From Perkinsus chesapeaki ATCC PRA-425 (taxonomy: Eukaryota > Protista > Perkinsozoa), in contig JAAPAO010000146.1 in NCBI GenBank assembly GCA_013115145.1, forward strand, positions 1 to 62,667: a stretch of DNA of 62,667 bases, in the 5' to 3' direction. This document shows, piece after piece, positions 26,400 through 31,990 of the stretch. The notes beneath the pieces are model-generated. The model made no database searches, was not told where the DNA came from, and was given only the letters and a program-made list of their open reading frames with translations. A program made the translations under genes and the position numbers. The stretch's first letter is position 1. Each line of letters begins with the position of its first letter.

Positions 26400-27880
26400 A
26401 TGTCTGCTTGCCAGTAGTGGCAGGTGAAATGTGCTATACGTAAAGGGAGGGCGGTAGCCGTCGGGTTCACCGAGTCTTCGTCCCAGAGAGATTGCCGTGT
26501 TGCTCCAGCTTGCCTCGGCGATACCTGACATGGAACTCAAGACCGCCGCCAGCCCTAACCAAGCAGACTTACTGTGCCATGGCTCGCTCAGTGATAGCAC
26601 TGCCCTGAGGCACCACACGACGAAGTGAGTCCTGACTGTGGCCACCCATCTCGGGGCCCCTCTCCATAAATACATGGCGACCGGTCTTCAGCCGTCTAGT
26701 TCGGATACCTGCCCCCATCACAGACCCTACCCTTACCATTCCAACACCTCCGCCTACCCTTGGCTTCGTTGGCTAGACTAGCGGCCTTAAGCTTGTTGAT
26801 GTACTCTCGGCGCACACGCAGCCTCTCCGCCTCTGCTTTCAACTGAACCACCAGGCATCATCCCTGGTCACCGTCTCTGCCAGCATTACCTTCTTAGCAT
26901 CGGCATTAGGGTGCTGCTTCAGATGCTGCCTCATCCTAGCCTCCTTACGACGCTGGTGCTCCAACATGAGAGCCTGGTGCCGAGCTTCCCTATTAGATCA
27001 ATCCCCCCAGCGAAGGCCCAACTCCGTCCTACTTGTTCTTTTGCTTTTTAGTCTTCCTCTCAGGTTGGCCACCATCAGCCTTAAATCCCTCCTCCTCGAC
27101 TGTGCTTCCTTCCTTCCCCTCGGACTTGGGCGTCGTGACCAGTGGCCCCTCTACAGACTCATCCCACATCGGTGTGCGACGGCCTATGATCGTCAATGGC
27201 CCTTGCCAGACTGTATAATGACTACCTCGTTGCTCTTGCTCTTGCTGAGCAGCAGCAGCTGTGAAGAGGAGCTCCTTCGCATCATCCTCATCAGGATTTA
27301 CACTCTGCCCTGGCATCGCCACCGTGACCGCTGGGGCCAGGTTAGCCGAATGACGGATGGACTTAGGTACCCTATGGCCGCGCTGAATACACATGCATTA
27401 GCTCCCACCCGCCACGGGAGGCACACCTGAGCCGGTCCGTTATTGATGACCTTGGTCTCCTTAGCATCGTCATCCCAGAGATCAGCCAGCTTTTCCTGGT
27501 TAGGGTTGCGCTTTTGACCCTTCTTCTGTTGAACGCACTTCATCTTCCTCTCAAGCAGGCGGCTCTCGCTCGGCACCTGTCCCCAACCAGTCTAGCTCTC
27601 CCCGTATCCCCATCATTACCGTAGCTGTCTTGCCTTCCTTTGTACTGTTCTTTACAATATAGCGAAGGGCCTTAGGAACGCCTACAGAACAACGTTTCCA
27701 TTACCCTGGCCAGACCGCCACCGCCCCCCAAGTACCTTTGAAGCTTCCCTGCGTATCCACCATGAAGAGCTCGTCCGCGCTCTTGCTCATCATCTGCTTG
27801 GCATCGGCCGCCTCCTCAACTGCTTGTAGCTCAGCAGAGACATCGATCTTCCGTCCAGTCTTACGGACTCGCTTCACCAT
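26400..27880 (-). CDS. NOP53: Ribosome biogenesis factor NOP53/GLTSCR2 (end approximate)
   Basis: MVKRVRKTGRKIDVS, ELFMVDT, PAVTVAMPGQSVNP, SLRRVVPQGSAITER. Confidence 0.75.
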
Positions 27881-28039
27881 TAATAATAGCCAAACTGAAA
27901 TAGCTCCCCCCCTACCCACCAATACCCAACGCAGCATACGCATTAGTTCACGTGGTAAACGTAGGTATAGGGGTGGCAACGACTATAGTAACGATAATTC
28001 ATTCAATATATAAAGGTACAAGTCAACTTAGGCTGTCTG

Positions 28040-29434
28040 CTACTGCTGGCTATCGCTGTATCTGCTGGCAGCTGGTGAACTGGTGGACTCCATAAGAGAA
28101 TCGTTATAGGTGGAGTTAGGCTCGTTCATCATGCGTAGGCCCTTGCCGGTCAGACGATACCTATGTGAGAGCCTACCAACTACCTGGTACCCTTTAAGAT
28201 AGTACCTCCTAGATGGGCCCTCCTCTCCAAGGGCCTCCACTAGGCCCATCGGGGCCATCTCGGCCTCCAACCACCACATGGGCACCCATCCGGCCACGAG
28301 CTTCCATTCAGCCTGGGTAACTGGTTTCGCATTGCACAGTGTCGCCTAGTATACAGGAACGTACGCGCAAGTGGAGATCGAGCAGCAGACCTACCTCGAA
28401 AAGGCTGCGAAGGACCTGTCGGTAGTCGCGACGTTTCCCAGGCTTCAGCACACGCTTGTCCCATCGCTCCATGAGACAGTTCTGGCAGTTACTAGTCATT
28501 TCCGGGTTAATGGTATGGCATGTGTCACACTGCCAGCGGCCCAAATCTGACAGCACCACCACCGTCCAAGCCAAACCCTAGTAGAGTCTCACCTGCTGGG
28601 GTGAACCTGTGGTCAACAACTGTATGGGTCATGAAGAGGAAGCGCTCATAGATGACATTCATTTCCACACTATCAAAGGCCAAGACACGAAAGTTAGGCA
28701 CGGACTCTTGGATCTGATCACGGCAATCTATAGATCACTCTATGGAGGACAAGAAAGACATACCTTCTTAAGCCACTCCGAGCAGGCCCCACATGGCCAA
28801 AGCGGATTGTCGGTATGCCCATCGTTCATTTTGGTTGGGACATCAATTACAGCTATGCCCATGAACATACCCCTGTTGATCCTGGGATGGACCGAGCGAG
28901 CATGGGCAATGGCTGCCCTCTCGCTACAAAGGGATCCAGTTGGGAGGGAGACTTCACCGTTGATCCCCTCGAAGAACTCGTCACTGCCGTCCTCCATACG
29001 AACGTGTAGCATAGACAATACTAATTTACCGCTCTTTCTGTGGAAGAAAGGATCTGGCTGAAACCCATCAGCGATGGTCCTCTCCATGTACTCCCGTAAT
29101 TTATTAGCCAAGACAGCTGTTGGATCGGTGTCCGGTATGTCCTGGTACTGACGCATTCGAACGTACCTATTACGCTCTAAACGGTACCAAGTCCCGGGTT
29201 GCAAAGTCTGGCATTACTCTTTGGTAACTGTCCACATATCGTGGAGATCCGGAGCCTCCCTATCCCCGCTCATTGTAGAGGTTTGCTTCTGAGAAGGGTA
29301 CTATAGATTAAACGCCTGTCCGGTATGGCAGGACTTACCCGTAATAGAACCTCATCAGTTCCTCTACTGGGGCTGAATGAGGATGAGGAGGAAGCAGCAG
29401 TTGACTCCGACACAGGCGTCTCAGGAGCTCTCAT
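28040..29434 (-). CDS. Cytidine deaminase-RanBP2 zinc finger-winged-helix-like fusion, about 376 aa, 7 exons
   Basis: GSLCSERAAI and PCGACSEWL zinc motifs; WQCDTCHTINPEMTSNCQNC; GLVEALGEEGPSRRYY...YRLTGKG; joined in frame by GT-AG introns of 46-51 nt in the core. Confidence 0.8.
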
Positions 29435-29821: not shown

Positions 29822-31990
29822 ATGTCCGACTCAGTATTAACCGATATCTTTGCCGTGGTACCGCCGGTACTCGGTATGCTCTGGGCGGTCAAGGAGCTCA
29901 TGGTGCTGAAAAGAGTTCACCTTACTGGTCCTGCTCAAGGATCCGAACTTAAAACCAGGCTTATGGCTGATGGTTCGACCGATATCCAAAAGACGCTCGA
30001 CCTGATGCAAGAGATCTCTAAAAATATTGCTGATGGTGCTACTGCCTTCCTCGTCCAAGAGTACAAGTACATGTTGGTCTACGTTGTTATCTTCAGTGCT
30101 ATTATCGGGCCATGTGTTAATGTTGGTACAATGGTTGCCTTTATTGTTGGTTCCCTTACCTCCATTGCCTGTGGCTACATTGGCATGAAAACAGCTGTAT
30201 TCAGCAATGTCCGTACAGCTCACGAGGCTTGGAAGGATCTTGCGTCTGGCTACGATGTTGCCATTAGAGGTGGTTCTGTCATGGGTTTCATGTTGGTTTC
30301 GCTCGGTGTACTGAATCTCTTCATTCTGGTTTCCATTTACAATCTCGATGTGTTCTATGGGGAAGATCACCCTACCCTTTATGAAGCCATCGCTGGCTAT
30401 GGTCTCGGTGGTTCGTCTATCGCCCTCTTCGGTCGTGTAGGTGGTGGCATCTACACTAAGGCCGCTGATGTCGGTGCTGATTTATCTGGAAAGAACGAGT
30501 ATGGTATGGACGAGGACGATCCGAGGAACCCCGCTTGCATTGCCGATAACGTTGGTGATAATGTCGGTGATGTTGCTGGTATGGGTGCCGATCTTTTCGG
30601 TTCCTTTGCCGAGTCTACCTGCGCTGCTATGGTCATCTCAGCCAATGCTCCTCACTATATGGCCTGGAAGAGTATGATGTTCCCTTTGCTGTTGTCTTCT
30701 GGAGGTATTGTAGTTGGACTTATCACTATGTTGGTCGTCAATATCTTCTATAAGGTGAAGGAACTGCCAGATATCGAGAAGGCTCTGAAGGGTGTACTTG
30801 TCATTTCCACCATTCTGGAGACTCCATTGGTAATTGTTCTCTGCTGGTGGGCTCTTCCATCAGGTCACTTCGCTATTGATCCTGAACGTCTTAACTGCAC
30901 TTGGCTCAACTGCTGCTGCTCTGTACTCCTTGGTCTGTGGTCCGGTCTTATCATTGGCTACAGCACTGAGTACTACACTTCCCATTCCTTCTCCCCTGTC
31001 CGTGAAATCTCCGAGACTCAGAAGGTTTCCGCCGCTACCGGTATCATCTATGGTCTGGCTCTGGGTTACCTCTCCTGCATCATCCCTGTAATATGCCTCG
31101 CTGTCACCGTCTGCATTGCTCATACTATCGCTGGTATGTACGGTGTTGCCCTCGGTGCTTTGGGTATGCTTGGTACATTGACAATGGGTTTGACAATTGA
31201 TGCTTATGGCCCTATCTCTGATAACGCTGGTGGTATTGCTGAGATGTCTGAGCTTGGTCCTGAGGTGCGCGCTCGTACTGATGCGTTGGACGCTGCCGGA
31301 AACACCACTGCTGCTATTGGCAAGGGTTTCGCCATCGGCTCTGCCGCTTTGGTCTCCTTAGCCTTGTTCGGTGCTTACTGCGTCCGTGCTAAAGTCGACA
31401 CTGTCAATATCCTCGACCCTTGGACTTTCACTGGTCTACTCTTCGGTGCTATGATGCCTTATGCTTTCTCTGCTATGACCATGAAGTCTGTCGGCAAGGC
31501 CGCTAACGATATGGTTACTGAGTGCATGAGACAATTCCCGAAGATCATATCAGGAGAGATGCGCCCTCAGTACACCAGGTGCATTGCTATCTCCACTGAA
31601 GCATCGTTGCGCGAGATGATCGCCCCCGGTTGTCTTGTTATTCTTTCACCGCTCATTGCGGGCTTAATATTTGGTAAAAATTGCACTGCTGGTTTGCTGT
31701 CGGGGGCTTTGGTGTCTGGTGTCCAGATGGCAATCTCCATGTCTAACACTGGTGGCGCCTGGGACAACGCTAAGAAGTACATCGAGGCCGGTGGTCTTGG
31801 TCCTAACCATCAGAAGGGATCCGCTGCACACAAGAACGCTGTTACTGGTGACACTGTCGGTGACCCGCTCAAGGATACCTCTGGCCCGTCTATCAACATT
31901 CTCATGAAACTGTCTGCTATCATGTCTCTGGTGTTCGGTGGAGTTATCAGAAGGTTCTCTAACGATGAGGGTGGTCCTTTCTGGCTGTAA
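29822..31990 (+). CDS. VP1: Vacuolar-type H+-translocating pyrophosphatase (type I, K+-dependent), single exon, 722 aa
   Basis: DVGADLSGK, DNVGDNVGD, EYYT, GNTTAAIGKGF (Ala form), GDTVGDPLKDTSGP. Confidence 0.97.
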   Translation: MSDSVLTDIFAVVPPVLGMLWAVKELMVLKRVHLTGPAQGSELKTRLMADGSTDIQKTLDLMQEISKNIADGATAFLVQEYKYMLVYVVIFSAIIGPCVNVGTMVAFIVGSLTSIACGYIGMKTAVFSNVRTAHEAWKDLASGYDVAIRGGSVMGFMLVSLGVLNLFILVSIYNLDVFYGEDHPTLYEAIAGYGLGGSSIALFGRVGGGIYTKAADVGADLSGKNEYGMDEDDPRNPACIADNVGDNVGDVAGMGADLFGSFAESTCAAMVISANAPHYMAWKSMMFPLLLSSGGIVVGLITMLVVNIFYKVKELPDIEKALKGVLVISTILETPLVIVLCWWALPSGHFAIDPERLNCTWLNCCCSVLLGLWSGLIIGYSTEYYTSHSFSPVREISETQKVSAATGIIYGLALGYLSCIIPVICLAVTVCIAHTIAGMYGVALGALGMLGTLTMGLTIDAYGPISDNAGGIAEMSELGPEVRARTDALDAAGNTTAAIGKGFAIGSAALVSLALFGAYCVRAKVDTVNILDPWTFTGLLFGAMMPYAFSAMTMKSVGKAANDMVTECMRQFPKIISGEMRPQYTRCIAISTEASLREMIAPGCLVILSPLIAGLIFGKNCTAGLLSGALVSGVQMAISMSNTGGAWDNAKKYIEAGGLGPNHQKGSAAHKNAVTGDTVGDPLKDTSGPSINILMKLSAIMSLVFGGVIRRFSNDEGGPFWL

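Follow-up and report, generated by a model that had tools for sequence, protein, structure and literature searches.

A CDA-like deaminase of the LmjF36.5940 clade in Perkinsus chesapeaki joined to a RanBP2-type zinc finger and a predicted winged helix, in a three-part form conserved across Myzozoa

The LmjF36.5940-like clade of CDD/CDA-type deaminases was defined in 2011 by Iyer, Zhang, Rogozin and Aravind, who recorded that its Perkinsus members bear a C-terminal Zn ribbon, which they called ubiquitin-binding, and who suggested, from the domain fusions in the clade, a part in mRNA editing or DNA mutagenesis (PMC3239186). The fusion of deaminase and finger, and a possible editing role for it, have accordingly been known since that year. 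The words “wHTH” and “winged” do not occur in the text of Iyer et al. 2011 (PMC3239186), and our literature search found no paper dedicated to the alveolate proteins of this family, which is PF14421 in Pfam. Here we describe the family member of Perkinsus chesapeaki ATCC PRA-425, a relative of the oyster parasite, encoded by one gene of seven exons at positions 28040-29434 on the minus strand of contig JAAPAO010000146.1; this complete contig of 62,667 bp is the window that was analysed. The exons yield a single protein with three domains, a deaminase of the cytidine deaminase (CDA) fold, a RanBP2-type zinc finger and a predicted winged-helix tail, and this protein is orthologous to the CDA-like deaminase of LmjF36.5940 type known from Perkinsus. 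Two things are new: the assignment of the tail to the winged helices, and the finding that the three-part form is conserved throughout Myzozoa. An initial annotation of the locus, made from the letters of the DNA, had not recognised the architecture and had put it forward as a candidate for an undescribed system; that claim does not survive, the family being Pfam PF14421 and the Perkinsus combination of deaminase and Zn ribbon having been on record since the 2011 survey.

The member of the family with a described phenotype is TbCDA-like (Tb927.10.8850) of Trypanosoma brucei, the orthologue of the prototype LmjF.36.5940 (Moro-Bulnes et al. 2025, PMC12064671). On overexpression of TbCDA-like, CTP and dCTP fall, UTP and dTTP rise and gamma-H2A DNA-damage signalling sets in, RNA interference against it leads to accumulation of CMP, and the protein itself is cytosolic and moves to stress granules (PMC12064671). 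It is like the P. chesapeaki protein in its Pfam family, in its intact C-x-E/PCxxC site and in having a fused zinc-finger-type module, but it differs in its length of 585 amino acids (aa), its N-terminal CCCH fingers and its C2C2 insert, and it has neither a RanBP2 finger nor a winged helix. The pool and stress-granule phenotype is TbCDA-like's own. Other branches of the clade differ too, with CCCH fingers in kinetoplastids and an N-terminal Rossmann-like domain in chlorophytes and stramenopiles. Closer to hand are Pmar_PMAR003613/Pmar_PMAR005400 of P. marinus, which are orthologous to the P. chesapeaki protein and like it in clade, synteny and C-terminal Zn ribbon. TbCDA-like was also among 17 candidates screened for the editor of C34 in mitochondrial tRNA-Trp, and the editor identified was Tb927.3.4530 (PMC8677022); an editor of this tRNA-Trp type was considered for the present gene and rejected, the kinetoplastid family member having been screened and a different gene identified.

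The open reading frames (ORFs) at the locus number three, and the proposal of the initial annotation that they are parts of one spliced gene was borne out: the seven exons it drew all have GT...AG borders, share one frame and add up in phase to 1131 nt with no internal stop. The start codon lies at 29434-29432, with an in-frame TGA immediately upstream. Splice sites were judged from a three-species alignment of the DNA of the orthologous loci of P. chesapeaki, P. marinus and P. olseni, in which exons 3-6 have the same lengths and 79-84% nucleotide identity, and all introns fall to 29-46% identity with length differences not divisible by three. Ten of the twelve splice sites first chosen are correct; the other two, the start of exon 2 (at 29288, not 29300) and the end of exon 6 (at 28206, not 28191), had to be moved. 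At the acceptor of intron 1 (29289/29288) conservation restarts precisely at TTCAG/AAGCA in the three species (the slash marks the splice junction), and the CTATAG acceptor preferred before has no AG counterpart in P. marinus. At the donor of intron 6 (28206/28205) P. marinus has TAG and P. olseni TAA as the codon past the conserved AGGAG/G, so the five extra residues earlier given to exon 6 cannot code there. Read through from the donor chosen earlier, intron 6 (28161-28205) is open in frame in P. chesapeaki and not in the sister species, and it is this openness that led to the wrong choice of donor.

Both errors were in frame, and the product is therefore 367 aa long rather than ~376. It is identical to GenBank KAF4670825.1 (FOL47_001835; UniProt A0A7J6MH52, “RanBP2-type domain-containing protein”), the protein annotated on this contig, which uses both corrected splice sites; the translation of the largest exon (28764-29165, minus strand) agrees with its residues 57-190 at 100% identity. 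The DNA of the window was searched exon by exon, and the full-length analyses were run on KAF4670825.1 (367 aa). All features that follow lie on the minus strand. Exon 1 (29339-29434) encodes residues 1-32, part of a disordered, Ser-rich N-terminus in which the predicted local distance difference test score (pLDDT) is <50 for residues 1-36. Intron 1 (29289-29338, GTAAGT...TCAG) is 50 nt long, not the 38 nt implied when it was ended 12 nt early, with 38-43% identity and lengths of 50/55/53 in the three Perkinsus species, and exon 2 (29218-29288; residues 33-55 and 2 nt of codon 56) opens the family-specific N-terminal strand. The last intron, intron 6 (28161-28205, GTACTA...ATAG), is 45 nt by the three-species alignment and not 30 nt; at 50 and 45 nt the two corrected introns fit the other four (46-51 nt). 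The corrected model joins ...CTATTACGG to AAGCAAACC at 29339/29288 and ...CTAGGAG to GTATCGTCTG at 28206/28160, and the wing motif becomes ...GPSRRYRLTGKG... (G-P-S-R-R-Y-R-L-T-G-K-G) in place of the earlier ...RRYYLKGYRLTGKG....

Exon 3 (28764-29166; residues 56/57-190) holds the deaminase core, and alone it matches Pfam PF14421 (LmjF365940-deam, the LmjF36.5940-like CDD/CDA clade) with an E-value of 6.7e-22 and 78.7 bits, while the whole protein reaches 96.0 bits against a gathering cutoff of 27.1. With this match and an intact C-x-E and PCxxC, the CDA-type zinc deaminase core read from the sequence at the outset is upheld. The score for TIGR01354, the canonical CDA equivalog of NCBIfam, was 20.3 bits, below the cutoff of 113.65, and the Pfam scan gave no match to the hidden Markov models of the AID/APOBEC and DYW families, only PF14421 and a sub-threshold PF00383. 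The motifs C136-S-E138-R and P180-C181-G-A-C184 conform to the signature of the clade, which Table 1 of Iyer et al. 2011 gives as C[H]-A-E in helix 2 and PCxxC in helix 3, “same as CDD/CDA” (PMC3239186). An exhaustive search returned 483 representatives at E <1e-3. Seven residues, N125 (28959-28961), E127 (28953-28955), G133, C136 (28926-28928), E138 (28920-28922), C181 (28791-28793) and C184 (28782-28784), are invariant in 70 aligned homologues, and N125, E127, G133, C136 and E138 are likewise invariant in 150 representatives.

The full-length AlphaFold 2 (AF2) model has a mean pLDDT of 80.7, rising to >90 across most of residues 50-224, and predicts that the terminal strands 199-203 and 210-224 form the closing beta-hairpin of a CDA-type fold; this final hairpin and a linker are encoded by exon 4 (28593-28713; residues 191-230 and 1 nt). 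Both the model and the homologue alignment have an additional N-terminal strand and helix with a conserved H-R-K-S motif. The model aligns with the CDA of Burkholderia pseudomallei (3dmo) at Z 12.7 and a root-mean-square deviation (rmsd) of 2.9 over 124 aligned positions, in residues 68-219, and with blasticidin-S deaminase (3OJ6) at Z 11.6. By sequence, exon 3 found in the PDB only a marginal CDA match (E 0.39), and the match in an ESM Atlas shape search was confined to the deaminase domain. The family profile aligns the G-x-N-x-E...C-A-E-R block with the tetrameric CDAs 2d30 and 1jtk, where it reads G-C-N-x-E, and a docking model of a CDA places Asn42 and Glu44 in hydrogen bonds with the 3'/5' oxygens of the ribose (PMC9897663). 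Judged from these sequence alignments, the PF14421 family has kept not only the zinc centre for catalysis but also the clamp by which free-nucleoside deaminases hold the sugar hydroxyls. Homotetrameric CDAs (B. pseudomallei 3DMO, Bacillus subtilis 1JTK, human 1MQ0) and 3OJ6 have in common with the P. chesapeaki protein the fold, the zinc ligands, the catalytic Glu and the GxNxE block; compared with a homotetrameric CDA, the P. chesapeaki protein adds the N-terminal strand and helix, an insert between the third strand and PCxxC, and two C-terminal domains. A Pfam scan of ten long PF14421 members for other fusions recognised only the deaminase domain. Elsewhere in the family, a member of 513 aa that JGI annotates as “cytidine deaminase” has two tandem C-x-E...PCxxC units and resembles the two-domain forms of other CDA-derived clades.

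Exon 5 (28395-28546; residues 231/232-281) encodes the C4 zinc ribbon, which is of RanBP2 type, and then, past a basic linker, the start of the winged helix (helix 1). The ribbon itself, W235-C254 (28476-28535), is an exact W-x-C-x2-C-x3-N-x6-C-x2-C, as first reported, and fits the PROSITE pattern PS01358, W-x-C-x(2,4)-C-x3-N-x6-C-x2-C; in 31 homologous sequences the pattern stands 49-51 residues past PCxxC. As a single exon it scores 17.1 bits against Pfam PF00641, whose gathering cutoff is 27. A profile built from the C-terminal halves of the family was run against PDB sequences and matched the fingers of Nup358/RanBP2 (E 9e-6), the NZF of TAB3 (E 1e-4; the TAB3/TAB2 NZFs range from 1e-4 to 5e-3), Nup153 (E 7.5e-4), MDM2 (E 1.8e-3) and ZRANB2 (E 8.6e-3). 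The Foldseek rows for a model of the C-terminal fragment include Nup153 ZnF2 and the MDM2 C4 finger, at E >0.1. Its PROSITE-type spacing is the same as that of the RanBP2/NZF ribbons of Nup358, Nup153, TAB2/3, MDM2, ZRANB2 and Npl4, and on its sequence the finger is a genuine RanBP2-type ribbon.

Ubiquitin binding by NZF fingers reportedly requires a Thr-Phe pair directly past the second Cys, and the ubiquitin-binding subclass also has a hydrophobic residue in the last CxxC. The Thr-Phe signature is not present in the family, where this position is H-T in Perkinsus and x-[T/H] in all homologues, and the last pair is C-Q-N-C. Fingers of the ZRANB2 type that bind single-stranded RNA (ssRNA) are said to carry N-[F/W]-x-R-R past the conserved Asn; that signature too is not present, the segment being N-P-E-M-T in Perkinsus and N-x-P-hydrophobic-[S/T] in the homologues. 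The finger has a conserved pattern of its own, N-x-P-hydrophobic-[S/T].

The third part of the protein, residues 267-343 (28115-28439, a span that takes in introns 5 and 6), is predicted by the full-length AF2 model, with pLDDT of 83-90, to have the topology H-b-H-H-b-b-H, with helices at 272-284, 292-299, 304-311 and 333-340 and strands at 290-291, 317-320 and 328-331. Exon 6 (28206-28345; residues 282-327 and 2 nt) contributes strand 1, helix 2, the Trp-rich helix 3 (W-V-P-M-W-W) and the first wing strand, and exon 7 (28040-28160; residues 328/329-367 and the stop) the second wing strand (Y-R-L-T), helix 4 and a disordered, poorly conserved tail end. Of the top 50 rows of a VIA-align search, about 45 cover residues 267-353, with Z of 7.5-9.2, and all of these are winged-helix proteins, e.g., SSo2273 (2x4h; Z 9.2, rmsd 1.9, 66 residues), MarR on operator DNA (5h3r; Z 9.2) and the N-terminal winged helix of Rio2 (1tqi; Z 9.1), together with other MarR, DtxR/MntR, PadR, TubR, cohesin and ORC/Cdc6 winged helices. 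A Z of ~9 is middling on the structural aligner's own scale, and despite this the uniform fold class and the coverage of the full domain make the fold call sound, i.e., the tail is, on its predicted structure, a winged-helix fold.

Other approaches to the tail gave fainter signals. The C-terminal fragment folded alone gave a weaker model (pLDDT 73.5, helix 2 unformed), for which Foldseek returned only rows at E >0.1, including eS10, MarR and PadR; the profile rows in the PDB were weak, with Fur at E 0.006, BlaI at E 0.063, and YodB (range 0.006-0.13); and the language-model neighbours of the tail in an Atlas feature search, which serve as leads only, were all winged-helix families, with scores of 0.82-0.85. 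The tail has no Pfam or NCBIfam match, PadR and MarR included (E up to 1 for the tail exons, up to 0.01 for the full protein). The winged-helix-like tail of the initial annotation therefore stands as a fold, on the AF2 model and its structural matches, and its placement in the PadR/MarR families does not. With MarR, DtxR-MntR, PadR and the Rio2 N-terminus the tail has in common the order H1-b1-H2-H3-b2-wing-b3 and a wing of the form “G-L-hydrophobic ... Y-x-L-T-x-x-G”, but it differs from them in being a single-copy eukaryotic domain that ends an enzyme, in its Trp-rich, acidic helix 3 (M-W-W-L-E-A-E-M) and in having no MarR-type dimerisation helices; the linker and the wing are basic, rich in Arg/Lys. 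The tail can be aligned across the homologues, including a dinoflagellate subgroup that has no finger. That subgroup (n=6, dinoflagellate-like and environmental) lacks the RanBP2 finger and keeps the winged helix, with W-F-P-x-W-W and a Y-x-[L/V]-[T/S] wing, and the Perkinsus protein has both the Trp-rich helix and the finger.

All three parts of the protein have been held with great stringency. Among the three Perkinsus species the exons for the deaminase, the finger and the winged helix are 91-100% identical in aa, at a distance at which synonymous sites are saturated, so that each part is under strong purifying selection; exon 3 is 97-99% identical between the species and exon 5 is 100% identical across the three. 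The P. marinus orthologue as a whole is ~90% identical and falls in the same 90% cluster. The three-part order was found in perkinsids, dinoflagellates, chromerids and a gregarine: it is present in the dinoflagellates Effrenium voratum, Polykrikos kofoidii and Crypthecodinium cohnii, in the chromerids Vitrella brassicaformis and Chromera velia, in many environmental sequences, and in the gregarine Gregarina niphandrodes, where the second Cys pair is off the strict finger pattern. The Polykrikos and Crypthecodinium homologues derive from transcripts and have deaminase, finger and tail in one ORF, so that in these relatives the fusion exists on single mRNAs.

We put at about even the chance that the P. 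chesapeaki protein is a cytidine nucleoside or nucleotide deaminase that is tethered or regulated by its finger and winged helix. Its domain order is a disordered N-terminus, the CDA fold, the RanBP2-type ribbon ~50 residues past PCxxC, the basic linker and the winged helix. Such an enzyme would hydrolytically deaminate the cytosine of a cytidine-type substrate to uracil, gripping the sugar hydroxyls as CDA does; it would act on a nucleoside or a CMP/dCMP-like nucleotide, or at the very most on a terminal residue. Neither the finger nor the winged helix would be part of the active site; both would tether or regulate the enzyme at RNA or a ribonucleoprotein (RNP), at DNA or at a protein partner. 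Cytidine derivatives would in sum be converted locally and the pyrimidine pool controlled, in the way reported for TbCDA-like of kinetoplastids. Action at the level of cytidine is favoured because of the invariant N-x-E ribose motif and the pool phenotype of TbCDA-like, and a tethered enzyme fits both that phenotype and the association of TbCDA-like with granules. A structure-guided base-editor screen took at least 5 members per deaminase clade as Cas9 fusions, with the PF14421 family among those clustered, and listed activity on single-stranded DNA (ssDNA) only for five other clades (bioRxiv 10.1101/2023.05.21.541555).

Several points weigh against a tethered cytidine-level enzyme. A biochemical substrate has been established for no PF14421 member, and for TbCDA-like the authors did not obtain active recombinant protein, leaving it with no in vitro substrate (PMC12064671). 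The role of N-x-E is drawn from alignment and a docking study, with no structure from the PF14421 family, and metabolic nucleoside deaminases normally come without fused nucleic-acid-type binding modules. Those modules were gained independently, as CCCH fingers in kinetoplastids and as finger and winged helix in alveolates; the family splits into two structural clades in the base-editor screen (bioRxiv 10.1101/2023.05.21.541555), and function may not be the same in the kinetoplastid branch as in the alveolate one. The negative outcome of that screen, moreover, belongs to a heterologous assay that did not cover RNA.

It is possible, though we lean against it, that the protein is instead a polynucleotide C-to-U editor, the first idea of the initial annotation, in which the winged helix, the basic linker and the finger would hold RNA or DNA so that an internal cytosine reaches the CDA-fold site, by analogy with editors that join a binding module to a deaminase, such as ADAR1 (Z-alpha) or PPR-DYW. 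ADAR1 has a Z-alpha winged helix, double-stranded RNA-binding domains and an adenosine deaminase on one chain, and serves here as an analogy only: it belongs to the ADAR/Tad1 helix-4 division, acts on a different base and has its winged helix at the N-terminus. A Z-alpha match is absent among the top structural rows for the P. chesapeaki model. Features of the binding modules point both ways, since DNA-bound MarR is among the structural matches of the winged helix (Z 9.2), Arg/Lys are abundant in the linker and wing, and the modules are as tightly conserved as the enzyme in a family in which module acquisition recurs, whereas helix 3, Trp-rich and acidic, is unlike a typical recognition helix for double-stranded DNA and the finger does not have the ZRANB2-type aromatic/Arg-Arg pattern for ssRNA. 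The deaminase, too, has points on either side: mRNA editing or DNA mutagenesis was proposed for the clade by Iyer et al. 2011, and the CDA-like division with a C-terminal hairpin also holds true polynucleotide deaminases (DYW and toxin clades, Table 1, PMC3239186), but the invariant N-x-E sugar-hydroxyl motif ill fits an internal residue, the 3' oxygen of which is tied up in a phosphodiester, and the PF14421 family is not among the clades with ssDNA activity in the cytosine base-editor screen. The gamma-H2A signalling on overexpression of TbCDA-like and its association with RNA granules (PMC12064671) would suit an editor. The distribution of the architecture would not, as it is found in perkinsids, chromerids and a gregarine, outside the core dinoflagellates. 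To our knowledge, perkinsids, chromerids and the gregarine are not reported to share the extensive organelle RNA editing of core dinoflagellates. A more specific form, in which the three-part protein of perkinsids, dinoflagellates, chromerids and the gregarine is a targeted RNA/DNA C-to-U editor whose Trp-rich winged helix and finger select the target, we consider doubtful. An RNA editor of dinoflagellate organelles was considered separately and rejected, the protein having no obvious transit peptide and the architecture occurring also in lineages without known editing.

The finger and tail might also face proteins rather than nucleic acids, the finger binding ubiquitin or Ran-GDP and the winged helix a protein, so that the deaminase would be recruited or regulated by a ubiquitin- or Ran-dependent complex. 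Such an adaptor would agree with the label of ubiquitin-binding Zn ribbon that Iyer et al. gave the Perkinsus finger (PMC3239186), with the best matches of the finger profile, which are the Ran-binding fingers of Nup358/RanBP2, the ubiquitin-binding NZFs of TAB3/TAB2 and Nup153, and with the many eukaryotic winged helices (Rio2, cohesin, ORC/Cdc6) that are protein or RNP interaction modules; it is nonetheless improbable, the residues past the second Cys being x-[T/H] in all homologues, H-T in Perkinsus, and not the Thr-Phe that is said to be needed. More improbable still, to the point that we would be surprised by it, is a metabolite-sensing transcription regulator, the second idea of the initial annotation, with the winged helix on promoter DNA and the CDA-like domain acting only as a sensor of cytidine or a nucleotide. 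The fold of the tail is nearest to ligand-responsive bacterial repressors (MarR, DtxR/MntR, PadR), with weak profile matches to Fur, BlaI and YodB (E 0.006-0.13), but the invariance of the catalytic Glu and the zinc ligands over 150 diverged representatives argues for catalysis, the protein belongs to no regulator family in Pfam or NCBIfam, its helix 3 is acidic and Trp-rich, and the characterised relative, TbCDA-like, is cytosolic (PMC12064671). These explanations, and that of a cytidine deaminase tethered or regulated by its two modules, are not fully mutually exclusive.

The surroundings of the gene are stable within the genus, the order H+-translocating pyrophosphatase, deaminase, Nop53 being kept in P. 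marinus and P. olseni. On one side, an intronless ORF of 722 aa for the pyrophosphatase (29822-31990, plus strand) is divergent from the deaminase and lies 387 nt from its ATG, and the PF03030 neighbour is present in P. marinus and P. olseni as well. On the other, a gene for the ribosome-biogenesis protein Nop53 (27701-28039, minus strand) begins ~160 nt downstream of the deaminase stop. One P. olseni record of 738 aa fuses deaminase and Nop53, so that the Nop53-named proteins in the 90% cluster of the deaminase are an artefact of annotation and clustering. Farther along the contig, GC skew stays negative over positions 34000-60000, with values to -0.32 per 2-kb window and -2.3 cumulatively, probably because many consecutive genes there lie on one strand.

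PF14421 is widespread in protists and has repeatedly gained nucleic-acid-type binding modules, and it was such gains that led to the proposal in 2011 of a possible editor or mutator. To this are added here a corrected gene model, a winged helix not noted before, and an ancient and tightly conserved three-part form in Myzozoa, and the three-part protein is a defined construct for telling a nucleotide-pool enzyme from a nucleic-acid editor. Should it prove to be an enzyme of the nucleotide pool, it would represent ordinary metabolism with an unusual tethering; an editor, on the other hand, would mean that the group to which coral symbionts and shellfish parasites belong has a new editing system, unrelated in type to APOBEC, ADAR and PPR-DYW.

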